This document shows, piece by piece, positions 6,100 through 51,929 of a stretch of DNA of 52,787 nucleotides; the stretch's first letter is position 1; every line of letters begins with the position of its first letter. Where the stretch lies: positions 149,253,042 to 149,305,828 of the forward strand of contig NC_068981.1 in assembly GCF_001194135.2 (NCBI RefSeq), written 5' to 3'. The DNA comes from Octopus bimaculoides. Lineage: Eukaryota. A program made the translations under genes and the position numbers. The notes beneath the pieces are model-generated. The model had not been told where the DNA came from. It was given only the letters and a program-made list of their open reading frames with translations, and ran no database searches.

Positions 6100-6105
6100 T
6101 TTATT
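6100..6105 (-). promoter_or_regulatory. Candidate AATAAA polyadenylation signal of the chitin-binding protein gene
   Basis: AATAAA on the minus strand about 450 nt past the exon D stop; AT-rich background. Confidence 0.35.
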
Positions 6106-6553: not shown

Positions 6554-6743
6554 TTACTTCCCGTACGAAAATCCGCCTCCACTTCCTCCACCACCTCTTC
6601 CTCCACTACCACCACCACCGCCACCACGTCCTCCACTGCCGCCACCACGGCCTCCACCGCTGCCGCCGCCACCGCCGCCACGTCCTCCACTACCGCCACC
6701 GCCTCGTCCACCTTGGTTTCCGCCATAGTTTCCACTTTGATTG
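6554..6743 (-). CDS. Gly-rich chitin-binding protein probable terminal exon D, phase 2 start: NQSGNYGGNQGGRGGGGSGGRGGGGGGSGGGRGGGSGGRGGGGGGSGGRGGGGSGGGFSYGK*
   Basis: Strong acceptor TTTTTCATCTTTCCTAG. GGSGGR repeats resemble exon B. TAA at 6554-6556. The link to exon C cannot be verified because of the gap. Confidence 0.75.
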
Positions 6744-6779
6744 CTAGGAAAGATGAAAAACGAATGAAGATACATATAT

Positions 6780-6846
<67 letters not shown>

Positions 6847-6955
6847 CACACATATGCGCTGTGAAGCGTGTCACGTAACCAATGTAAAAGGTCCTACACT
6901 CCACTCCTAGTATTTCAATTAGCAGATAATCAGCAGGCGTCTATTTCCTCTACAT

Positions 6956-7296
6956 GAGTGGTTCTCAACCGTGGTCCATATCACTCCTTGGGGTCCATAT
7001 AAAATTTTTGGGGATCCACACAGGCAAAATACCAAATGGGATCCATAGTATTATTTTATAGGTTCATGAAAAAAGTATTCTGGTTGAGATGTATTTATTT
7101 CAAGAAACAGCTAGGTCTCTTTCCCCGACGTTTTACTCTGTTCAACTTACACAAGTGATCGTGAGAAAAACCAAATAGGAATTTTTAAAGAAGTATCTAT
7201 AAAACTAATTTCTAAACATTGAATGGCTATGGAGATATACTCGAATTAAATAGTAATCAAAGGGACTCATAGATAAAAATTGGTTGAGAACCACTG
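6956..7296. mobile_element. hAT (Charlie-like) MITE
   Basis: TIRs (G)AGTGGTTCTCAACC / GGTTGAGAACCACTG; 8-bp TSD ctctacat/atctacat. Confidence 0.88.
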
Positions 7297-8354
7297 ATCT
7301 ACATGTATAAATGAAAGTAGTTCTTCTCTATGAGATGCCCTTGTGTCCTTTGATAGATTTTATTATAAATCTTAAGTGGTAGCGTTCGTCGCACTCATCA
7401 TACAATGGCATGTTAGGATTGGCTAGTTTAGTCACCAACCCACGCATGTACTAGGTTACATGATACAAGCACAGGTAGAACCTAATCTAACTTGAACTGA
7501 GGTATTAATCAATATCATGGTGTCCTTAAAGCTATCAATCAGCTCGTTATATTATGTTCAAGTTAATATCAGAGCGGCAATATAGAAAGAAATAAAAGAT
7601 AAATCGGCAAACAAATATTGAGTTTAATATGAAAATGTAACCATCTGTATATCCGATCATATATCAGTGTTTAATGCTATATCTTATTAGATATCTATCA
7701 ATACATCATCGCTCTATTAAAATCCTCTCGACCAACCGTGTTTCTTATTTTTTCGAAGGCATTTGGAATTCATAACAACGAATACACAATTAGATTAATT
7801 CGGAACTGATCGTATACCAGTTACTCGTTAGCACAATGGTTTACTTTTTCCTTTACAGAACACCAAGTGAAAACTTACTGGCGCACTTCTCTTGGGAAGT
7901 AAAAATATTACTTGGATATTTCTTGTGGAAAGTTATACAAAACTTTGGAATAAAGTTAAAAATTTACATATAGTTATATGCAATCATATCTAACATGTTC
8001 GAGATAGAAAGATGATGCGCTGCAGATATAGTCTCAAGAGAAGAAATTCTCCTTGCAGACAGTATAAGTGTAAACACACTACTAGGTCATGAATGGCGTC
8101 ATCGGACCGTAGGTCACAAGCATTTTTGCGTTATTACGCATCATCAGATACGTATACTGAGCTGTCGTTCATGGCCACTATAAGCTGATCGTTCTCATAT
8201 TAGAACAGCAAATAGGACATTTGTTGTAATTATAATGTTGGGGAAGAACTTCATGCGCCATGTTAAAATAATGCTTTTTTAAATATATTTTTGTGCTGTG
8301 TGTGTTCATTCAGTTCAAGTCATGTTCAATGGTAGCTCACTGTGTTCGTCGAAA

Positions 8355-8731
8355 ATGCGCCTTGATTTCAAGACAATGCATAGCCGCATACCGCCAGAAA
8401 GACCAGCAACAAATTTAAAGGACTGGACGGCGTGGAAGTGCTGCCGCATCCAGCCTATAGTCCAGACGTTGCTCCATCTGACTACGATCCTTTCCAATCA
8501 ATGTAGTACTTTATGAAAGGTCACCGATTTAAGTCATTCGATGAAGCCGGTCAAGAAGTTTTCGATTCAAAGCTGAAGGATTGGTACTTTGACCGAAAGC
8601 TTGCACATCGTTGGCAGAAGGTCGTGGAAAATGATGGTCTTTATTTTAAAGAATGGTTGTTGTTTTTGAATGAATTCTTACATAAAAAATCATTATTTTA
8701 ACACGGTGCACGAAATTTTCCCTCAAACCAG
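8355..8731 (+). mobile_element. Mariner transposase C-terminal relic with probable right TIR, intronic
   Basis: FQDNA*PHTA...EVLPHPAYSPDVAPSDY...RWQKVVENDGLYF, with in-frame stops; ends before TA. Confidence 0.85.
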
Positions 8732-9324
8732 TAATTAGGGCGTTTAATAACCATACTTGAGTATAACAAAATTATAAATAATACATTTTCCAAGACACTC
8801 AAACATATTTATGAATTTTCTAAAGCTTTAAATAATATAAATAATAATTTTATCGCAAATGAAATGGCTGTTGAGCATAATTGATTTGTGAACTATATGC
8901 AAAATTAAGGCCTTTTCTATTTCTTGTTTNNNNNNNNNNNNNNNNNNNNNNNNNNNNNNNNNNNNNNNNNNNNNNNNNNNNNNNNNNNNNNNNNNNNNNN
9001 NNNNNNNNNNNNNNNNNNNNNNNNNNNNNNNNNNNNNNNNNNNNNNNNNNNNNNNNNNNNNNNNNNNNNNNNNNNNNNNNNNNNNNNNNNNNNNNNNNNN
9101 NNNNNNNNNNNNNNNNNNNNNNNNNNNNNNNNNNNNNNNNNNNNNNNNNNNNNNNNNNNNNNNNNNNNNNNNNNNNNNNNNNNNNNNNNNNNNNNNNNNN
9201 NNNNNNNNNNNNNNNNNNNNNNNNNNNNNNNNNNNNNNNNNNNNNNNNNNNNNNNNNNNNNNNNNNNNNNNNNNNNNNNNNNNNNNNNNNNNNNNNNNNN
9301 NNNNNNNNNNNNNNNNNNNNNNNN

Positions 9325-9919
9325 CGTCCACCTTGTCCTCCACGGTTTCCTCCTCCTCCACCTTGTCCATAACTTCCACCTCCTCCTCCTTGTCCTCTTC
9401 CTCCTTGTCCTCCTCCTCCTTGTCCTCCTCCTCCTTGTCCTCCTCCTCCTTGTCCTCCTCCACGGTTACCTCCATTTCCACCATTCCATCCTCCTTTTCC
9501 TCCTCCTCCACGGTTACCTCCATTCCATCCTCCTTGTCCTCCTCCTCTGTTTCCTCCACCGTTTCCTCCACCTTGACCATATCTACCTCCACCTTGCCCG
9601 CCACCATTACCTCCGTTCCAGCCACCATTACCTCCGTTCCAGCCACCATTACCTCCACCATTTCCGCCTCCACCATTTCCGCCTCCACCATTTCCGCCTC
9701 CACCACGTCCAAACTCTATGGCGCTCTTAGGCACCTGCAAGTTGCCACAGTCAGTGTTATTCAGGTAGTCGCATACTTGGATCCTAGGATTAAATACAGT
9801 ACCAGGAGCACATTCCTGAACGTCATTTAGGTAACCAAGGTTGCATTCGTAGTACATGTGACACATTTCATTGTGACGCTTCTTAAAGTCTTCTGCATAG
9901 TCACCACACAGTTCGTTGG
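9325..9919 (-). CDS. Gly-rich chitin-binding protein exon C, 3' end lost in gap 8930-9324: ChtBD2 #2 (CGDYAEDFKKRHNEMCHMYYECNLGYLNDVQECAPGTVFNPRIQVCDYLNNTDC) then Gly/Asn/Trp/Gln block
   Basis: Acceptor CTATTTTCTAG. The phase-1 join C|CC = Pro is in frame with exon B. Canonical C-x14-C-x5-C-x10-C-x12-C-x7-C spacing. Confidence 0.92.
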
Positions 9920-10119
9920 CTAGAAAATAGAAAGAAAATATTGTCAGTGCTCACTATCTTCTTCTGTTAACTTTACCACTCACAAACGTCATTATTTCCC
10001 TTTCACATTTACTCTTACTATAGAGAAATGAACGTGTATCTGTGAGACAATCTATATTATAATTCTGCTTAATCGTTGGCCCATTACACTTTAGTTAGTT
10101 AGAGGCAGAGGTGGAGTGT

Positions 10120-10163
<44 letters not shown>

Positions 10164-10173
10164 NNNNNNNNNN

Positions 10174-10218
<45 letters not shown>

Positions 10219-10415
10219 AGTGAAACACAAAAGGTAAGACGAAACAAGAGAGAAAGATGTATGTATGCATGTATGTAATGTGTATATGTATCTCTTTATT
10301 AACACGCTGATGGAAATGTGACACTGTCGTTAGTTGAAGAGAGAGGAGAGAGAGAGAAGAGAGAAGGATAGAAAGAAGAGAGGAAATAGAAAGAGGGGAG
10401 AGAAAGGAGGTAGAA

Positions 10416-10490
<75 letters not shown>
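10120..10490. repeat. (GA)n and purine-rich microsatellite tract
   Basis: Direct reading. Confidence 0.95.
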
Positions 10491-10491
<1 letters not shown>

Positions 10492-10664
10492 GAGAGATGG
10501 TCAGCGGTGAGAGATAGGTGGAAAGGGTTGCTATTATGGTATGTGATGAAATGGTTGAAGGAGAGGGTAAATAGAAAGAGATAGGGTAAAGCGAAAATTT
10601 AACGCAGGAGAGATGTGGGAAAGAAGTAAAAGGAAAATGGGAGAGAGAGAATAAGAGGAAGAAT

Positions 10665-10795
10665 GTATGTGAGTGAGAGAATGTGTGTAAGTGAGAGAAT
10701 GTGTGTGAGTAAGAGAATGTGTGTAAGTGAGAGAATGTGTGTGGGTGAGAGAATGTGTGTGAGTGAGAGAATGTGTGTGAGTGAGAGAATGTGTT
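10665..10795. repeat. 18-bp minisatellite (ATGTGTGTGAGTGAGAGA-like), about 7 copies
   Basis: Direct reading; produces the LSLTHI repeat in the ORF track. Confidence 0.9.
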
Positions 10796-11388
10796 TACTG
10801 GAGTGAACAGCGAAAAGTGATAGTTTTTGTTTTGTTTTTATATTCTTATCACCCATCAGATAACGCATGCGCTTTAGTGAAGTAACTATCGTCTGCTTAG
10901 TCAAAGCTTATAAAATATGGCCAACAACAGACGATGTAAAACTAACAAGACAAAGAATGATATGGTCTTTTTCAAATAACCATGTTAAAATTTGTTAAAA
11001 CATTACCAACGTAGTGAAGCAGAATAATATTATATTTTTCAAAAGTTTCTTGAAATTGCTCCTCTAATACTACTTATATGGACTTTACCATAATCTCAAG
11101 GCTCTAATGGTTCAGAAAATTATACAATTCCACCTTACAGTTTTCAAATCAACCGTGGAATTTTCACGGAGTACTACTAGTAACGATAAAGCTACTTTAT
11201 ACATGTTAACGTACATTTGGAAACACTACTTCATGTCAATCATAAATAAGAAAGTTGGGTGAGCCAATTTCCATCTTAGAACCTGACCACAGTTGATTCT
11301 TAACCAGATGGAGTACAGGGACATCGCTGTTTTATAAAGCACAGGCTGTGCGTTATCTATACCCCTGCTAGTATGACCACATCCGATT

Positions 11389-11424
<36 letters not shown>

Positions 11425-11454
11425 GATAATAATCCTTTTTATATATGGCCAACA

Positions 11455-11870
11455 ACAGACAATGTAATTTGGGGGGAAGGGTCAGTCCATTACATCGACC
11501 CCTGTATGTAACTGGTACTTAATTTATCGACCCCAAAAGAATGAAAAGCAAAGTCGACCTCGGTAGAATTCGAACTCAGAACGTAGCCACGGACGAAGTA
11601 TCACTAATCATTTTGTCCGGCGCGCTAACGATTTTACTAGCTAGTTGTCTTTACACAGGATAACAATAATATTGGTTTGAAAGAAGGGAGGGGATAAGTC
11701 GATCACATCGACTCTAAAGTTCAACTGGTACTTATTTTATCGATCTCCAAAAGATGAAAGGCAAAGTCTACCTCCGTAGAATATGAATGTAAAGGGAGGA
11801 CGAAACGCCGTTAAGCATTTTGGCCAACGTGCTAACGATTTTGCCAGCTCGCTGCAATTTTTCAAAGAAT
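11455..11870 (-). mobile_element. Two inverted SINE copies, same family
   Basis: Reverse complement of the core: ATCGACCCC...GGATGAAAGGCAAAGTCGACCTCGG...GAACTCAGAACGT. Confidence 0.8.
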
Positions 11871-12709
11871 AATGTTAACAATTGATAAGCGAATGCTTTA
11901 GTTTACAGAATCACACAGCATATAACGACAGGTTTCAGTACAGCTATATATTTTAGTACCTTGCTTATTTTGGTGATTTAAGCGTGTCAACACACATGTG
12001 ACACCCTTGTGGATCACTTAGGAGGCAGACATATGAATTTTTTGATGGGATGTATTCCAAGATTATTAATGGGTTGTATCCCAAGATTATTAATGAAATG
12101 TATCCCAAGCTTATTGATTTAGTACTAGCTGGGGGTCCCACTACACCAGTGTGATTAATTCTCATGAAAATATTATAGGAAAAAGTTACGCAAACTGATC
12201 AGTCGGTAATTTTAGAATCCTTTCCGAATCACATGACCGAATTCACATAACCAAAAGAGACAAGGCAGTGTCTACGAAGACCTAAATATTACTAAAGTGA
12301 CATACTTGCAGAAAGTTATGTGCCTATACTGAAGTAATGAACAGATCACTCAACTGAGATGCTGGTTAATGCTGAACCATATTAGCCTGTGGTACTTGTT
12401 TTTGTAGCTAGATGGATGAAGCCGTTAACAGCAAAGTACCTAGTATAACTTGTATAACGAGTATTAGAATATAAATCACCACCTGTTAACTGCTTGCTTA
12501 GAACTCTTTCATTCGCTCATTCATAATTATCTTTCACTCAGAGAGGAAGCATCTATGAAGTAGATCATCCTGCTAGAAATAGCAGCCAAATTTATCTCTA
12601 ATGACACCCAGCCATCTCAAAATAAGGAAGGACTGATGTTGCAGTATACAATAACATTGTATCGTAACAGTGACAATAATATCGATATGAATATGTTGTT
12701 TCTACTTAC

Positions 12710-13349
12710 GCCGTGCGCCGTTGCATTGTACATTGCCAGGGTAATCGCAATACTTTTGGTTATCGTTGAAGTACAACCCTTCTGGACACTGAAGCCTTTG
12801 TTCACCACTGTCGCCTTGACATTCGAAGTAATAGCTGCAATCTGATTGGTCAGCGCGTGCACAACTTCCACCACCTCCTTGCCAGTTGCCTCCTTGTCCT
12901 CCACCACCACCACCACCACCACTACCACCACCACCGCCTCCTTGACCATATCTTCCTCCACTACCTCCACCACCTCTTCCTCCGCTACCACCGCCACCAC
13001 CTTGTCCCCATCCTCCACTACCTCCGCCACCTCTTCCTCCGCTACCACCGCCGCCGCCACCACCTCTTCNNNNNNNNNNNNNNNNNNNNNNNNNNNNNNN
13101 NNNNNNNNNNNNNNNNNNNNNNNNNNNNNNNNNNNNNNNNNNNNNNNNNNNNNNNNNNNNNNNNNNNNNNNNNNNNNNNNNTTGCCAGTTGCCTCCTTGT
13201 CCTCCACCACCACCACCACCACCACTACCACCACCACCTCTTCCACCACTACTGCCGCCACCACCACCCTGACCATATCCACCACCACCACCTTGTCCGC
13301 CAGTATTTCCACCGCCTTGACCCCAGTTTCCTCCTTTATTTCCTCCTTT
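12710..13349 (-). CDS. Gly-rich chitin-binding protein exon B, phase 0-1, internal N gap 13070-13181: Gly/Ser/Arg/Gln block then ChtBD2 #1 (CARADQSDCSYYFECQGDSGEQRLQCPEGLYFNDNQKYCDYPGNVQC)
   Basis: Acceptor TTTTCCTTGCAG, donor GTAAGT. Six-Cys pattern C-x7-C-x5-C-x10-C-x12-C-x7-C with the CPxGLxF and CDY motifs of peritrophin-A/CBM14. Confidence 0.92.
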
Positions 13350-14436
13350 CTGCAAGGAAAAAGAAAAAAAAATCCAATTATTCGGTAAAACAAAGCTCAA
13401 TTAATAAAGATTAATATTAATTTCGAATATTAACAGTGACGTAATAACATCGTTGTTTAGCCACTGGTCAGTTCAAGGGGGAATTGTAATAGAAAACATT
13501 CCAAGTCACCTCTGCGTTTAGAACTGTATTTTCTTGCTTTAAGATGACAGGATGTGATTTGTAAGCATTTAGCTACTATTTCTAACGGAAATGTTTTCTC
13601 AAATTGATTAAAAAAATAATGTCGTTGATCCCATAAAAGAAAATGACCTTCTACTGACCAAAGAAATTAAACATTTATTGCTTACTTGTTAGTAATATTA
13701 AATGTCTAAGTATGATTTGGAAAAGCTAAGATTTTAAAACCAAAAAAGTACCCGGCTAAAACGCACTTTACAAATGCAACCTGTAAGTGGAATAGTAAAA
13801 ATATGCAAGACTTTTCTAAAGTTCAACATCTAACAGTTGTTGTTACTCCAATTTCAGCGATGGAGCTTTGTCTTCTTTCTACGAAAAATTCTAATAATTA
13901 AAAATACGACGAAAGGAACCATACGCATATTCACAAACATACGTATATATAGGCATGCATACATGCACATATATATACATACATGTACACAAACAAACGA
14001 ATGTACAAGCCTCATGTTTGTGCTACCGCCTCGACAGAAATTTTTCTGTTTTTGAAGTCAAGCCTAAAACTTCAGAATCACCATCAGTATGTAAATGTGA
14101 AAGTAGAGATATAGAAAACAAACTAGAATAAATAAATAAATAAATAAATAAATGAAGTTCTTTCCCCTCATTCTGTAACTCTTGGCAATCCGTGAGCACG
14201 ACCTGGTTTCGATTTTAACTTTAGCTGAAGTCATTTGACTTCAATAAACCGATTTATGGTCCTTAGGACAAAAGTACTAATTACTCGCCCCAAATCCTAC
14301 CCCGCCCTATTGAATAATAAACCGTTCTTTCTGTTCCTTTTAAAGAAACTATTAATTTATATAAAACCATCTGAACATCCTAAATATATGTATTGAAGAA
14401 TGTTGTAGATAAAATGCTTATTTTAATAGTATAGTC

Positions 14437-14619
14437 CAGTGGTTCCCAAGCTGGGGTCCGTGGACACCTGGTGGTCCGCAAAGGTAGTACTGTGGTGGGA
14501 TGGGGGTGGTCCGTGAACGTAATTCAGAATTTCACATATAAATATATACATAAGGATAAACATATTAAAAGGGGTCCGTGGACAAAACTCATTAAAAAAA
14601 AAAAGGTTCGGAACCACTG
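14437..14619. mobile_element. hAT MITE
   Basis: TIRs CAGTGGTTCC / GGAACCACTG; 8-bp TSD gtatagtc/gcatagtc. Confidence 0.88.
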
Positions 14620-14919
14620 GCATAGTCAGAGGGAAGAAAGTGTCCAACCGAGATTTGAGGCGGAAAGTGCAATGGAAGAAGAATCTATGATTCGTAAGAT
14701 ATCATCAAGCCTAGAGTGAATCTTTCCAGCAGAATGGAACCCTACAGGCTTAGTTTGAAGACTTTTGACCAAAGTGCCCGCAGAATGAGCTAACTGGATT
14801 CATGGGATTCGAAGCGAATTTTTCAACTAATTAGCCATTTCCAATATAAACACGAGACCGAAAAGGGATGATAATAGTCAAATATTATTTTATGGCTCGA
14901 ATATTACATATTTTAATAC

Positions 14920-17290
14920 AGTGGCGAGCTGGCAGAATCAGCACGCTGGGAAGAATGCTTCGCGGCATTTCACCCGTCCTTACGTTCTGAGTTCAGGTTC
15001 CGCCGAGGTCGACTTTACCGTTAATTCTTTCGGGATCAATAAAAGAAGTACCAGTTGACTACTGCGATCTGCGATCGCTGTAATCGACTTACTACACCTC
15101 CGAAATTACTGACCTTGTGCCAAAATTTAAAACCAATATCACATATTCAAATGCTTCCTGGAAGGATCAAAGTAAAGTCGACTTCGGTAAGGTTTGAAAT
15201 CAGAACGTACTATTATGTAACCAAATGCATTACGGTATTGCTGTCAGCGGCTCTGTCGGTTAAGCATACACTATCACCTATGTTATGAATAAAATAAATT
15301 GTGCATTTATACAAAATATTGCCTGATGAGAGTCTAAATGGATGCTTAAAAAATTAGGTCAAATTCTACTCTCTCTATGAAAGCTATACCCCAGCAGATC
15401 CTCAAATATGAAACGTAACCGAAGATGCCAGTTTACAATCTACAAATGAAGCTGACATACTTAACTAATAGAATTTTTGTTGGAAGGAAGTGAGTTCTTA
15501 AATAAGGATTTCTTTAAAAATGAGTCTCATTTATGAATTTTTTTAGACTGCAATGTTATTAATATAACTTTTCTTGTAAGGCGGTGAGCGGGCAGAAACG
15601 TTAGCACGCCGGGCGAAATGCTTAGCGGTATTTCGTCTGCCGCTACGTTCTGAGTTTAAATTCCGCCGAGGTCGACTTTGCCTTTCATCCTTTCGGGGTC
15701 GATTAAACAAGTACCAGTTACGCATTGGGGTCGATATAATCGACTTAATCCGTTTGTCTGTCTTTGCTTGTCCCTTCTGTGTGTAGCCCCTTGTGGTTAG
15801 TAGAGAAATAAGAAACGTTAGTACGCCGCGTGAAATGCTTAGCGGTATTTCGTCTGTCTTTATGTTCTGAGTTCAAATGCTGTGGTTAACTTTGCCTTTC
15901 ATCCTTTCGGGATTAAGTACCAGTTGCGCACCGGGGTCGATCTAATGTACATGCCCCCCTCCCCCAAAATTTCGGGCCTTGTGCCTAGAGTAGAAAAGAA
16001 TATTTGATGTGTAATAAAGTGCTCAGTTGTATATATTCAGAGGCATGGAAAAGTACTTTTATTATACATACTCAGAGCTACAAAATACTATGACAGGTTG
16101 GGCGTGTACAAATTTAGAAATTACTCTATTTATTGTATTTTCAGTTATTTTTATCGATGCGCATGCTTATGAAAATGGCGGCATTGCAGACAGCAATATT
16201 TTACACATATTTTTGCATTTATCTTTTAAATATCGACTTCTTACATAGGAAGTCAATACATGATCTTACATAGTACAACACATTCAAAGATGGGGCAGCC
16301 GATTTAATCCATCTCTCTCTCAGCAATGTAATTATTATTTTCTTTTATCAACTACAGATAGATGCAAAGCAAATTTGCAAGGAATGGAGGGAGGTGAATT
16401 CAGAACGTAAAGGGACGCAAGCAAATATCGCAAGATTTTAACTACTACTACTCTGGGTCTGACAATTCACTGTTTTAATAATATTTGTTGTAACATAAGT
16501 ATAATACCAGAAATTCGTGGAGAAAGAACAGTCGATTAAATCGGTCCTTGTATTTCACTGGTATTTTATTTTATCTACTCTGGAAGGATGAAAGATAAAG
16601 TGTACGTCGGCGGGGTTTGAACTCATAATGTAAAGAGTATTAACTAATAATTTCATCGATCTTAGTATTTCACAGGAAGTTTTTCTTTTTTAATGAAGGA
16701 TTAAAGGCAAAGTTAACCTTAGCAGGATTTGAACTTAGAACATAAAGAACCAGAACAAATGCCACAAAACCTTTTCTCCTACGCTTTAACGGTTCTGCCA
16801 ATCTAAGAAAATATTCTTTTCTAACAAGGTGAAAAATTTTTCGGTGACAGTCGATTATATCAACCTGTAGTATCTGAATTTATGTTATCGTCACCGGAAG
16901 GATGAAAGGTAAAGTAGATACAAGAGTAATTTGAACCCGGTAAGTGAAGTTACATAACTAAATACTGCAAACACTTCTGGGAGGCTATGCCAATCAACAC
17001 CATGATAATTCTTTCACATTTGGGCACAAGGCTGGTAGTTCTGTAGGGAGACGGCAAGTCGATTACATCGACCCCATTACTTGACTGATACTGCTTTTGT
17101 TTCAAATTGCAGTACAAGGCCAGCAAATTTTATGAGGATTGCTGCTCTAGTTTATCGACTCCGCAAGGATGACAGGCAAAGTTGACCGTGGTGGAATTTG
17201 AGCTCAGAACGTAATGAATTGGAAGAAATACCGTTAGGCATTTTGTCAGACACATTAACGATTATACCAGCTTTTAACCTCTTATTCCAA
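14920..17290. mobile_element. Cluster of SINE copies in both orientations; best copy 15578-16000 (+)
   Basis: Repeated core motifs at about 14920-15260, 15578-16000 and 16380-17290. Confidence 0.8.
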
Positions 17291-17544
17291 ATCATAATTA
17301 TGATATCAATAATAGTTTACATACAAGCTATTCTCATAGAAAAATAAAATTCTGAAATTAGCTTCAATAGGAACTGTAGAGTAGAAAATATTACCTAAAT
17401 ATCGACATCGTTCCCAAATTTGATGTTTGGTGTTTAGACAGATGCTAGATCAATAGCATTACAATTAAACATTGCTAATTAATTTCACACAATATATTAC
17501 AGTTATTTATTGAAATACACTGAGTCTTCGAAGAGAGAGAGAGA

Positions 17545-17609
<65 letters not shown>

Positions 17610-17725
17610 TCACGTTCGTTCCTTTCCCGATTCGTTACCTGAATGGAAGAAATATTAGGAAAAAACAAAAACAAAGTTCTTAATGCTTATATACGCATCA
17701 TTCAGAAGAAACTTTCTATACATAC

Positions 17726-17811
17726 CTGTCCGCCTGACCAATTATTGCCACCACCATTGTTGTTGTTGTTAGATCCTCCTTTTCCACCACCGCCAGGATT
17801 GAGTCCGTACA
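17726..17811 (-). CDS. Gly-rich chitin-binding protein exon A, 86 nt, phase 1-0: (V)YGLNPGGGGKGGSNNNNNGGGNNWSGGQ
   Basis: Acceptor TGTTTCTAG, donor CAG|GTATGT. The phase-0 end fits exon B, and the Gly/Asn/Trp vocabulary matches the other exons. Confidence 0.8.
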
Positions 17812-27135: not shown

Positions 27136-28971
27136 GTATGTATGTGTTAGTGTATATACAAACGTACACATATATAAGACAGAAGGGTTGGATGAAAAAA
27201 TGTAACGTAACTCACGGTATTGGTATAATTCAGAGTAAAGAATGAAACAGCTGTAATCTCTACGGAAATATCAAAGTTCTTTGCCGCTCATACTTCGTCA
27301 TTTTGCTTACACGCACGCTCCCCCCCCCACACACATACACATATACACATATACACATATATATATATTAGTTGTATACATGCACATATACATATGTATA
27401 TGCATACTTATATGTGAGTCTATGTATGCTGTGTTTTTGTGTGTGCGCATGTTTGCGATTACTTACATTGTCTTTTTACCAGTCTTCGTGCAGGAACATA
27501 GTTGATGCAAAGCAGAAGTCCCACAAGAATGAATGTTTGCTGGAGCAAACCCATCTTTGGACTGGAAGGAAAAGCAAATAATATTTCAATAAATTACAAG
27601 AAGAAAGCGCAACAGAAGTGATAGCAACAGAGTATCAATTCCAATAAATAATTGTATTTCAAGATCTTAAAATATCGATTATATTACTACTTCTTACATA
27701 TAAAATTGTATTAAATGAGGTTGGGGAATTTAATTATACAATAAATAATACAAATATTCTTCTGACGGTGGTCAGATCGTACAACAATTAGGATTTAGTT
27801 GAAAGCGAAAAAGGCAATGGTGATGGTAATGATAGTTGTGGTGATGATGATACTGTTGGTGATGTCATGGATAATTATGACGGTGTCTAACATACATACG
27901 AGACCACTGGTTTGGAGAGAGAAAAACTGCCGATTATAAAGCACCCGCTGTTTTTGTTTTTTCTTACCCTCTCAAGGATGCAATCTAATGTTGGCCTTAA
28001 GAGAATTTGAATTCAGAATGCAAAAGGACGCAACTAAAAGCGTTTTGTTCATCGTTTTATCGATTTTTCTATTAATGCTTTCCTCGAGGGTGATGCTAAT
28101 GTCAAAGATATAAAGGAGATAAATAATTCATAATGTTTACGCCTTTCTTTCACAGCATGTGTATAGAGTAACAGCTTTAATTTGGGAAACGAAACAGAGT
28201 TGCTCACGAAGCTCAATATAGTCAACTTCTACTCTAAAACTCTTACTTGCTTATGAAATATTCCCGAGTTCTATTGTTTTTTTTTCTTTTCATATTCAAT
28301 ACTAAATCAGTTATTCTTAATAATAACAGGCAGGGAGCAATCTGTTCAGTAGAATCTGGTATATTTCGGTTATTTATTTTTCAAGTCACGCTGGAACGAG
28401 AGGTCACAGTAATTACTGAAAGAATACAGTACGAATTATGGTAAAGCCAGAATAATCCCAGTATAGATATATCTCGTATTGTACTATCTATTGAGTGACG
28501 AAGCAGAAGCGCTCTTGAGCGATTTTGTAATCGTTTCCTCTCTATATATTCTATATCGCAGGAAATATTTGTCCGGTACCAATAACTTCGTGCTGTTGTG
28601 GTTTAACCTCCAGTCGGTCGCCCCAACTGAGTAAAGCTTTGATAAAATGTTTTCTATCGAGGCAATGCAGTCTTGCTTTCCTAGATATCGTGTGCACCGA
28701 ACTATTTTGTCGAATGTGCCCTTTCCTTGATCATTTCGTAGACCGAAAAACAGTTCCTGAGGAAGCATTTGACGGCATTTCCAAGATCTTCCCTCGTTGA
28801 CTCAACTGTGTAGCTCTTATTGTTTAAAACTACATCAGTCGTGATCGAGTAGAAGACAGTCCAGCCGTGACCATCCTATCTTTTTCAGTAGACTGTAGGA
28901 TGTAATTCGAGTGAGATGTGGCTGCTGTTTCTAGTAGATCAAATGACCAATATGAGATTCTCACATCTCCT

Positions 28972-33155: not shown

Positions 33156-33544
33156 CAAATATTCGCTAAAAGTCAGAAGCCACATTAACTCGATAGACCT
33201 TGTGGTCCAGCTTAATACCACTCGAAGAAGCCGGAAGCAAATTGAGCTTGGTACTGCCCGTGGCTCACATTTGACAGATATTGTACATCGTCAACCACAC
33301 ACAGCACGTGACTTTCAGCAACTATCTCATTCCAATTTAATTACTTCTTTTTTCGATGCTTGAATAATTAAGATACCAAATCGAGTCCTCTGTTTATCTA
33401 AGACAAGTAGCATACTATTTACAAATGAAGAGGTTCCTGAGGTAATGGAAATGATACGTCCAGCAAATGTTACCATGGCATCTAATGCTGAGCTATATGA
33501 TAGGAGTGCAAGGCCAGGACCATCTTCATATTCGCTATCGGAAC

Positions 33545-34328
33545 TAATCCCATTAAACTTCGATTCATCGCTAAAATGAATCTGCCACCACTGTTCTTCT
33601 GTCCAAACGACATATTCGTGAGCGAAATGAAGACGGGCTCTTTGATTCTTCTTGGAGATCAGAAGTTTCTTTGCCAGCGCTCGTGCAAGCAACCCAGAAC
33701 CTCATAACCTCCGAGAAACTGTTTTGCGCGATACGTTGACATCGGAAGTGGGGCCAAACTCGCAAGATATCTCAGCAGCACTCTTAAACCTATCCTTCAG
33801 TGACATTCTAACCATAATACGATTCTGTCTTGGTGAAGTTTTATGAGGACTACCGGTTTTTTGGTTTAGCATCTGTCGATTCTGATGACTTAAAACGAGC
33901 TACAATTCGTTGCACAACACTTCGCTATCACAGAATTTGACTTGCCCTCTTGGTGAAAGCACACAATCCTTTGTTTTTCATCACAGGACACCGGTCGTCT
34001 CTCACTAGCCGCCGTGTTGACATTGAATGTTCCAATAAGGTATGATCGTAATAAATAACTGTTAGCCCATTAACAGTCTTCTAAACAACAAATACCTCGG
34101 TTAGTAATTCATTTCTTCTGCGTGACCCTTAACTGCAATTTGGAAGATTGTTTATTTCCTCATAACTTACAAAATATTTATTCCATTCACTTGAAGTTTT
34201 CACAAATGATAGATATTAGATGTACCTAAATATGTGTAAAATATCTAGTCTCAACGTTTTGTTAATCTTCTGTAATAACTATTTCAATACACTTGTTCTT
34301 CCTGTTCCTTATATTATCGCGGCTACTG
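33545..34328 (-). mobile_element. 5' half of a Tc1-family transposon
   Basis: TA|CAGTAGCCGCGATAATATAAG terminus. HTH-like DEKQRIV..H and G.P.KTS..Q.R, then LISKKNQRARLHFAHEYVVWTEEQWWQIHFSDESKFN (first DDE Asp). Truncated after that. Confidence 0.88.
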
Positions 34329-51643: not shown

Positions 51644-51679
<36 letters not shown>

Positions 51680-51746
51680 AACAAGTGCCGTAATTTTTCT
51701 TAAAAGAAAACTGTGCACTGCATTTAGTTGAATGGCGTCTACTAAC

Positions 51747-51929
51747 CGGAAGGATGTGAACAGGACGTGGAAGAAGCTTGATGATCTGGAAATGGGGGCT
51801 ATAATGGTCGTCATAGTTGACAGGAGGTAATTCTGTTCCATTTCGTATGTGTCTAATTGTCACCTTCTTCCCAGTTAAATGGGTATGGAGCTGTGAGGCG
51901 AAGATGTAAATTCCACCGTCTGGTAACGC
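51747..51929 (-). CDS. Tbh: Tyramine/dopamine beta-hydroxylase internal exon, 183 nt, phase 0-0: ALPDGGIYIFASQLHTHLTGKKVTIRHIRNGTELPPVNYDDHYSPHFQIIKLLPRPVHILP
   Basis: Acceptor TTATCTTTATAG and donor GTTAGT read directly. IFASQLHTHLTG (CuM His-x-His) and DxHYSPHFQ are DBH/TBH signature motifs; MOXD1 has DFNFQ instead. Confidence 0.96.

Follow-up and report, generated by a model that had tools for sequence, protein, structure and literature searches.

The closest described counterparts of the gene reported here are matrix proteins of chitinous tissues. In the beak of the squid Dosidicus gigas, secreted proteins with peritrophin-type chitin-binding domains, DgCBP-1 to -4, have been proposed to coat the chitin and to form the scaffold of the beak, and Gly/His-rich coacervation is assigned to separate proteins, the DgHBPs. 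The oyster protein CgCBP, which consists of a signal peptide and two ChtBD2 domains, is a chitin binder, and its knock-down impairs the chitinous periostracum (bioRxiv 10.1101/2022.04.18.488701). In insect resilin (pro-resilin, CG15920), Gly-rich elastic exons flank a chitin-binding exon (PMC9999432). RTMP1, a protein of the chiton radular matrix, has a long disordered Gly/Ser-rich region and a putative chitin-binding region (PMC6351634). The shell matrix proteins Pif and BMSP combine ChtBD2 with a VWA (von Willebrand factor A) domain, or with laminin-G (LamG) in Pif-like proteins, and ChtBD2 together with repetitive low-complexity sequence is recurrent in lophotrochozoan matrix proteomes. Here we describe a minus-strand gene of Octopus bimaculoides, located in a stretch of 52,787 nucleotides (RefSeq assembly GCF_001194135.2, contig NC_068981.1, positions 149,253,042 to 149,305,828). 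We refer to this whole stretch as the window and number it from its first letter. The gene encodes a Gly-rich protein built around two tandem CBM14 (ChtBD2) domains. Our preferred reading, which we hold with about even confidence, is that the product would be a matrix protein that is secreted, anchors itself to chitin and has resilin-like arms able to associate with one another.

A multi-exon gene encodes two CBM14 domains between Gly-rich arms

Exon boundaries and reading frames were established by direct, base-by-base reading and translation of the minus strand of the window. We conclude that the locus is a genuine protein-coding gene with several exons. Its minimum length is 11.3 kb, and it would be about 21 kb long with the candidate exon at 27561-27467 described below. 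Exon A (17811-17726, 86 nucleotides) lies between the acceptor tttctag/TG and the donor CAG/gtatgt. It is entered in phase 1 and left in phase 0, so one base has to come from an upstream exon, and its product, (x)YGLNPGGGGKGGSNNNNNGGGNNWSGGQ, is the beginning of a Gly/Asn-rich N-terminal arm. The GGNNW motif in exon A is similar to GGNWG and GGNWQ in exon B. Exon B (13349-12710, 640 nucleotides as assembled) follows the acceptor ccttgcag/AAAGG and ends at the phase 1 donor CGGC/gtaagt. The entire exon is one stop-free open reading frame (ORF), which runs from the Gly-rich N-terminal arm, with the motifs GGRGGGGSGG, GYGQGG and QGGNWQ, into the first CBM14 domain. Exon C begins at 9919, behind the acceptor ttttctag/CCAACG, and extends at least to 9325 (595 visible nucleotides), its end falling inside an assembly gap at 8930-9324. 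It encodes the second CBM14 domain followed by at least 129 residues of a Gly/Asn/Gln arm (GGNGGWNGG, GGGQ, GRYGQGG). Exon D (6743-6554, 190 nucleotides) has the acceptor tttcctag/CAATC, which requires two bases from the exon upstream, and closes with the stop codon TAA at 6556-6554. Its product, (x)NQSGNYGGNQGG(RGGGGSGG)n...GGGFSYGK, is a Gly/Arg/Ser tail.

Exons A and B join in phase 0. Exons B and C join in phase 1, where C plus CC gives Pro, and the resulting sequence between the two domains is C-NGARPNEL-C. Both in-phase joins and the eight-residue linker had been proposed in a first-pass annotation, made by a model from the letters of the window alone, and translation reproduced them. 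That annotation had also described four exons with canonical splice sites. AG and GT are indeed present at every visible exon boundary; the exon C donor is inside the gap. The visible product is 463 residues long and 51% Gly. It reads, in order, Gly block, CBM14 domain, NGARPNEL linker, CBM14 domain, Gly block, and Gly/Arg tail with the stop codon. In a six-frame scan of the window we found no further Gly-rich, Cys-rich or CBM14-like coding stretch, and an exact look-up of the exon A and exon D ORFs in other assemblies returned no record. We also considered exon C as the start of an independent gene and rejected it: it lacks an ATG, the ORF ahead of it is only a polypyrimidine tract in translation, and its acceptor is kept in a related contig, L001 (see below).

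Both Cys-rich domains belong to the CBM14/peritrophin-A/ChtBD2 family. From first to sixth Cys, domain 1 occupies 12723-12863 on the minus strand (CARADQSDCSYYFECQGDSGEQRLQCPEGLYFNDNQKYCDYPGNVQC) and domain 2 occupies 9747-9908 on the same strand (CGDYAEDFKKRHNEMCHMYYECNLGYLNDVQECAPGTVFNPRIQVCDYLNNTDC). The pair scores 63.4 bits with the Pfam profile CBM_14 (PF01607), which has a cut-off of 22.1 bits. When the domains are searched singly, each passes on its own (39.4 bits for domain 1 and 35.6 bits for domain 2). The Cys residues are spaced 7-5-10-12-7 in domain 1, which has a short first loop, and 14-5-10-12-7 in domain 2. These spacings follow the peritrophin-A pattern, for which the reference given in a study of the Aplysia protein EHEP is CX15CX5CX9CX12CX5-9C (PMC10619976). 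Translation, Pfam and Cys spacing together uphold the domain order that had been proposed, a Gly block, two ChtBD2 domains separated by eight residues, a second Gly block and a Gly/Arg tail.

Sequence matches in the PDB were to CBM14 modules of chitinases (E=1.2e-6), Avr4, tachycitin, Aplysia EHEP (E=2.8e-4) and squid DgCBP-3. A low-confidence AlphaFold2 model of domain 2, built from a shallow alignment, has the beta-hairpins expected for a tachycitin-like fold. In a Foldseek search of this model against the PDB, the best 11 matches were all CBM14 modules, though weak (E >= 0.09). The top match was Aplysia EHEP, with 44-47% identity over 36 columns of the low-confidence model. Aromatic-rich motifs are kept in both domains, YYFEC...GLYFN...CDYP in one and MYYEC...GTVFNP...CDYL in the other. 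Motifs of this kind are usual in chitin-binding CBM14 domains and are taken as a mark of chitin binding.

The closest relative is a diverged ORF that matches one exon

We searched the two-domain core, with and without its Gly flanks, against 5.8 billion clustered proteins using a word-indexed homology search. The only close relative was an ORF, P0001, with its cluster mate P0154, carried by short genomic Logan contigs from several runs. With the flanks the list of 100 candidates was filled, and without them there were 2 candidates; since nothing else close was returned in either case, we conclude that this collection contains no annotated protein with these domains. An exhaustive HMMER search with domain 2 as the query gave 874 matches, and identities were taken from the 150 that were listed. 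Among these 150, all except P0001 are at most 49% identical, and in that single domain. CBM14 proteins with several domains make up most of the top of the listing, and the entries whose source was looked up belong to tunicates, insects and a hemichordate. Neither the word-indexed nor the exhaustive search returned a protein with the same architecture. The first-pass annotation had not recognized the product as a named protein, which agrees with these results: the closest relative is the unnamed genomic ORF P0001/P0154, and no named homologue is present among the matches listed.

P0001, on contig L001, matches exon C alone, with the acceptor at the same position and in the same phase (ag/CCAAT). 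Over this match the two sequences are 81% identical in amino acids and 76% in nucleotides, and third codon positions account for 35 of the 51 differences. In the domain-2 exon the ratio of nonsynonymous to synonymous differences per site (pN/pS) is 0.14, with synonymous sites saturated. We conclude that the domain-2 exon is under strong purifying selection. When L001 was compared with the window by blastn, the coding part for domain 2 was the only part that aligned (77%), and flanks and introns did not. Because the flanks do not align, L001 is best regarded as a paralogue that is old or an orthologue that is distant; it is unusable for filling the gaps of the window.

Two contigs from related samples, L001 and L009, allow the exon to be compared with its surroundings. 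The whole exon, including a Gly-rich tail of 65 residues, is 96.3% identical without indels, and identity is 83% and 74% in the flanks, where indels are numerous. Retention of the exon without indels indicates that the Gly-rich arm after domain 2 is conserved coding sequence. This second member of the family is represented by a single exon, which encodes CBM14 domain 2 and the 65-residue tail with two extra Cys residues. It was seen in genomic reads of at least nine runs (L001-L006, L009-L011) in two slightly different versions (P0001, P0154). The exon ends in GGGAAG/TAAGT, which can be read in two ways: as the phase 2 donor GGGGGGAA/gtaagt, or as an in-frame TAA stop after GGK.

Assembly gaps leave the join to exon D probable and the N-terminal arm uncertain in length

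The gene has very likely been missed or truncated by automatic annotation, because two exons run into gaps and half of the residues are Gly. The first of these gaps (13070-13181, 112 N) lies within the Gly block of exon B, and on either side of it the Gly frame is the only sensible one. That frame is kept across the gap in the present assembly (168+112+2 = 282). The length of the gap is an estimate, however, so the preserved frame says little. At the edge of the gap is an exact 57-nucleotide repeat: 13182-13238 is identical to 12880-12936, which stands directly before domain 1. The repeat may be either a true tandem repeat with a unit of about 170 nucleotides or a false duplication from haplotypes or contig ends. 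A 57-nucleotide duplication beside a gap is the pattern expected when two haplotypes or overlapping contig ends have been scaffolded in tandem. Together, the gap and the repeat place the length of the N-terminal arm between about 85 and about 190 residues.

The second gap (8930-9324, 395 N) covers the 3' end of exon C, including its splice donor or stop codon. Gly codons reach the edge of the gap, and AT-rich non-coding DNA is found on its far side. Since the donor or stop of exon C is inside this gap, the join between exons C and D is not verifiable from the window and is inferred rather than read. We consider the join likely because of three observations. First, exon D shares homology at the DNA level, and in the Gly frame, with the SGGRGGGGSGG repeat found in exon B (the local score is 114, versus 56 +/- 9 for codon-shuffled controls). 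Second, the phase needed by the exon D acceptor is the phase 2 of the donor AA/gtaagt in the L001 homologue of exon C. Third, a candidate polyadenylation signal, AATAAA, is located at 6100-6105 on the minus strand, about 450 nucleotides 3' of the stop codon in an AT-rich stretch. In addition, the six-frame scan found no other coding sequence in the interval from exon C to exon D.

The alternative that survives best is that the chain of four exons owes part of its make-up to errors in the assembly or in the gene model. Exon D might then come from another transcript or be a decayed duplicate, as might exon A or the candidate first exon, and the Gly block of exon B might be inflated by a haplotype falsely duplicated at the gap. 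The protein would be shorter, with a Gly arm, two CBM14 domains and a second Gly arm ending inside the gap at 8930-9324. The exact 57-nucleotide repeat and the hidden exon C donor are consistent with such a protein, as is the L001 exon, which can be read as ending in the in-frame TAA with no further exon required. Exon D is also open in two frames. Nevertheless, exon D has a good acceptor, a stop codon, a downstream AATAAA and in-frame homology to the exon B repeat. Its phase requirement is that of the L001 donor, and nothing else between exons C and D appears to be coding. We regard the artefact as unlikely, and it would alter the length of the protein and not the core finding.

A candidate signal-peptide exon lies upstream

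Exons A to D have neither a start codon nor a signal peptide. An in-frame ATG 10 nucleotides upstream of exon A (MFLVYGLNP...) was rejected, because it provides no signal peptide for a disulfide-rich protein and a canonical acceptor intervenes. We scanned both strands of the whole window, with the phase left free, for a non-microsatellite ORF that starts with ATG, encodes a hydrophobic core and reaches a GTRAGT donor within 15-40 codons. By that scan, the only signal-peptide-like exon in the window is at 27561-27467 on the minus strand. Its acceptor, ttccttccag/TCCAAAG, is strong, its ATG at 27554 (ATG GGT) has a Kozak-like context, and its donor, T/gtaagt, is in phase 1. The exon thus lies upstream of exon A on the strand they share, and its phase is the one required there. 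Its product is MGLLQQTFILVGLLLCINYVPARRLVKRQ plus one base, and when joined to exon A it would read ...KRQ-L-YGLNPGGGG. It is possibly the first coding exon that the CBM14 gene lacks; alternatively, it could be part of another gene, unseen because of the gaps at 19.7-25.7 kb. The model of the first-pass annotation is incomplete at the 5' end, where 27561-27467 is the candidate for a signal-peptide exon. The product is probably secreted.

The arms are cationic, free of acidic residues and resilin-like in composition

The four arm segments comprise 342 visible residues and are 58-75% Gly. They contain no Asp, Glu, His or Ala and a single Pro. Arg and Lys account for 23 residues (net charge +23), and there are 9 Trp, 7 Tyr and 1 Phe, with many Asn, Gln and Ser. 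The aromatic residues are spaced every 15-30 residues. The 122-residue core, in contrast, has 19 Asp/Glu versus 9 Arg/Lys, and its net charge is -10. As core and arms are oppositely charged, the arms of one molecule could make contact with the core of another. A Pfam search with the arms alone matched no family.

The arms had been called silk-like or elastomeric in the first-pass annotation. The first of these terms did not hold up, since the arms have no poly-Ala or GA blocks and not one Ala in 342 residues. A resilin-like, or low-complexity sticker-and-spacer, description would fit them better. Sticker-and-spacer sequences carry aromatic residues and Arg in a Gly-rich or polar background, as in resilin-like and phase-separating low-complexity regions. 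In spidroins, a role in phase separation is attributed to Arg-Tyr cation-pi contacts (PMC12772222).

The charge of the arms also bears on a second alternative, in which the protein would be an immune or antimicrobial effector. The CBM14 pair would then target the chitin of fungi or parasites, or the animal's own wounded cuticle, and the arms would be membrane-active or agglutinating. A net charge of +23 with no acidic residues suits an effector, and tachycitin, a CBM14-like antimicrobial protein, is among both the sequence and the fold matches. Tachycitin, hyastatin, penaeidins and type II crustins would serve as models. Hyastatin has a Gly-rich region and a six-Cys domain and binds chitin, and penaeidins have an unstructured tail and a chitin-binding Cys domain (PMC2866484). 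These proteins are small, however, about 5-12 kDa with one Cys-rich domain. The octopus product has two domains and at least 463 residues, which is several-fold larger than hyastatin (11.7 kDa) or tachycitin (73 residues). Moreover, its arms are not amphipathic, with 58-75% Gly and almost no aliphatic residues, and tandem CBM14 domains with long low-complexity arms are more typical of matrix proteins. An effector function is, in our judgement, improbable.

Comparison with described chitin-binding proteins

Like DgCBP-1 to -4, the octopus protein would be a secreted component of a mollusc chitin composite with peritrophin-type domains. The match to the CBD-gamma domain of DgCBP-3 (PDB 7bwe) has E=3.7e-4 and 23.8 bits with the two-domain core, and E=1.5e-3 and 21.8 bits with domain 2. 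The comparison covered CBD-gamma of DgCBP-3 alone, and the match is at the level of the domain family and not of orthology. The squid beak also differs in its division of labour: its Gly/His-rich coacervating sequences are in the separate DgHBPs, whereas the octopus protein fuses His-free Gly arms to its chitin-binding core. CgCBP is likewise a mollusc protein with exactly two ChtBD2 domains, but no Gly-rich arms are described for it, and our homology searches detected no close sequence relationship.

Resilin is similar in layout, with Gly-rich, Tyr-bearing regions on both sides of a chitin-binding part and on separate exons, although the match is one of composition only. Resilin has a Rebers-Riddiford domain, whereas by Pfam the octopus protein has CBM_14 only. 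The lack of a Rebers-Riddiford domain means that it is not a member of the resilin family. Furthermore, its arms lack Pro-containing units of the GGRPSDSYGAPGGGN type, with one Pro in 342 residues. On this evidence, the likeness to resilin is one of analogy and not of homology. RTMP1, a matrix protein from the chitinous feeding organ of a mollusc, likewise combines low-complexity Gly-rich sequence with a putative chitin-binding part. It differs in having a Trp/Phe-rich, type-3-like chitin-binding region, a His-rich region and predicted phosphoserines and in lacking CBM14, and we detected no sequence similarity between the two proteins. Pfam found neither VWA nor LamG, the domains that accompany ChtBD2 in the Pif and BMSP group, in the core, the arms or the candidate first exon.

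Among arthropod proteins, CPAP1 and CPAP3 (obstructor) have one or three ChtBD2 domains, respectively, at fixed spacing and little else. The octopus protein instead has two domains eight residues apart and about 340 or more residues of Gly-rich arms. Closer in composition are unnamed arthropod proteins (Parnassius mnemosyne CAK1580890.1, Popillia japonica KAK9685083.1) that combine CBM14 with Gly-rich low-complexity sequence. Such arthropod CBM14 proteins (P0004, P0138) are 34-35% identical to the window domain. They have many domains with (GGGGS)n linkers or acidic Gly/Asn/Asp linkers between them, in contrast to the two-domain core and cationic terminal arms of the octopus protein. Because these unnamed insect proteins carry CBM14 modules with Gly-rich linkers, the combination of CBM14 with Gly-rich sequence is not new in itself. 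The unusual feature is a tight, acidic two-domain core with long terminal arms that are rich in Gly, free of acidic residues, cationic and aromatic-bearing.

A proposed model of a chitin-anchored protein with self-associating arms

We propose that the protein would be secreted by a chitin-depositing epithelium and that the tandem CBM14 pair would dock it on chitin fibrils. The flexible cationic arms would then extend between the fibrils and associate with one another by contacts of Arg with aromatic residues, contacts among aromatic residues and hydrogen bonds of Asn/Gln; the acidic cores of neighbouring molecules may be further partners. Tyr residues in the arms would be available for cross-linking. 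Such an assembly would form a protein phase that is hydrated, compliant and bound to the chitin. A structural role in the matrix of the beak, radula, sucker or gut cuticle, as the first-pass annotation had put forward, is a reasonable inference.

If this model is right, the gene would provide a compact natural coupling of a chitin anchor to a low-complexity polymer that is elastic or prone to phase separation. It would be relevant to chitin-composite biomaterials such as beak, radula, sucker lining and gut cuticle, and it could serve as a template for recombinant chitin-binding elastomers. The arrangement of Gly-rich arms around a chitin-binding module, the solution used by insect resilin, would also have arisen separately on a CBM14 scaffold. 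A bolder proposal, which we consider doubtful, is that the gene belongs to a mollusc family specific to one lineage, in which at least two members have diverged with intron positions in common, and that this family independently invented a resilin-like or coacervate-forming material within one polypeptide. If so, one chain would merge the roles that the squid beak divides between the DgCBPs, which coat the chitin, and the DgHBPs, which form the phase-separating, cross-linkable filler. On present evidence, the protein is a plausible addition to the CBM14 matrix proteins, a large class in which it would count as ordinary.

Several points weigh against a secreted, chitin-anchored protein with resilin-like arms. 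The signal peptide is a candidate only, and the 9.6-kb intron between its exon and exon A would contain four gaps. The exon C donor and part of exon B are within gaps, which makes the C-D join and the lengths of the arms uncertain. The protein collection has no ORF in which the two domains are joined. The AlphaFold2 model of domain 2 has a mean predicted local distance difference test score (pLDDT) of 59.7, which is low confidence. Cationic Gly-rich regions beside Cys-rich chitin-binding modules occur in antimicrobial peptides. Finally, the CBM14/peritrophin-A fold exists in proteins that do not bind chitin, including Aplysia EHEP, which binds phlorotannins, and Der p 23 (PMC10619976).

A secreted protein of the gut lumen or mucus would accommodate those two proteins and the place of EHEP as the top Foldseek match and among the PDB sequence matches. 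The ligand of its CBM14 domains would not be structural chitin but, for example, a polyphenol or catechol, as for EHEP, or a glycan, and the arms would act as spacers or bring about precipitation or gel formation. Such a protein is very unlikely, given that the EHEP match is short and the structure model weak, that EHEP consists of three packed domains with no Gly arms, and that aromatic motifs of the chitin-binding type, as generally understood, are kept in both octopus domains.

Neighbouring sequence in the window

The introns between exons A and B and between exons B and C contain at least nine decayed copies of a repeat that resembles a short interspersed nuclear element (SINE). The copies are about 160-200 nucleotides long and occur in both orientations, at 11473-11854, 14931-15070, 15587-15970, 16519-16950 and 17046-17277. 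Rfam and ARAGORN searches of the whole window returned nothing, and no tRNA was recognized in the SINE-like repeats. The texture of the window, rich in AT, microsatellites and SINE-like copies, suits an octopod genome. Weak remnants of helix-turn-helix regions of Tc1/mariner-type transposases are present on the minus strand at 33327-33692 and 33893-34069 (HTH_Tnp_Tc3_2, 19.8 bits; HTH_SB, 16.6 bits), with both scores below the cut-off. A suspected mariner-like C-terminal fragment on the plus strand of the C-D intron, at about 8400-8680, had no Pfam match.

The B-C intron also contains a gap of 10 N at 10164-10173, which is inside a (GA)n microsatellite and irrelevant to the gene model. The (GA)n tracts around this gap extend over 10120-10497 and are followed at 10660-10794 by 7.5 copies of an 18-nucleotide minisatellite, AGAATGTGTGTGAGTGAG. 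Runs of (CA)n, (GA)n or (TA)n likewise adjoin most of the other gaps in the window. A DBH/PHM-like gene is represented at the window's right end by an exon on the minus strand (51645-51929). The exon encodes the C-terminal domain found in copper type II ascorbate-dependent monooxygenases (PF03712, 67.6 bits), and its nearest database relatives are 63-67% identical.

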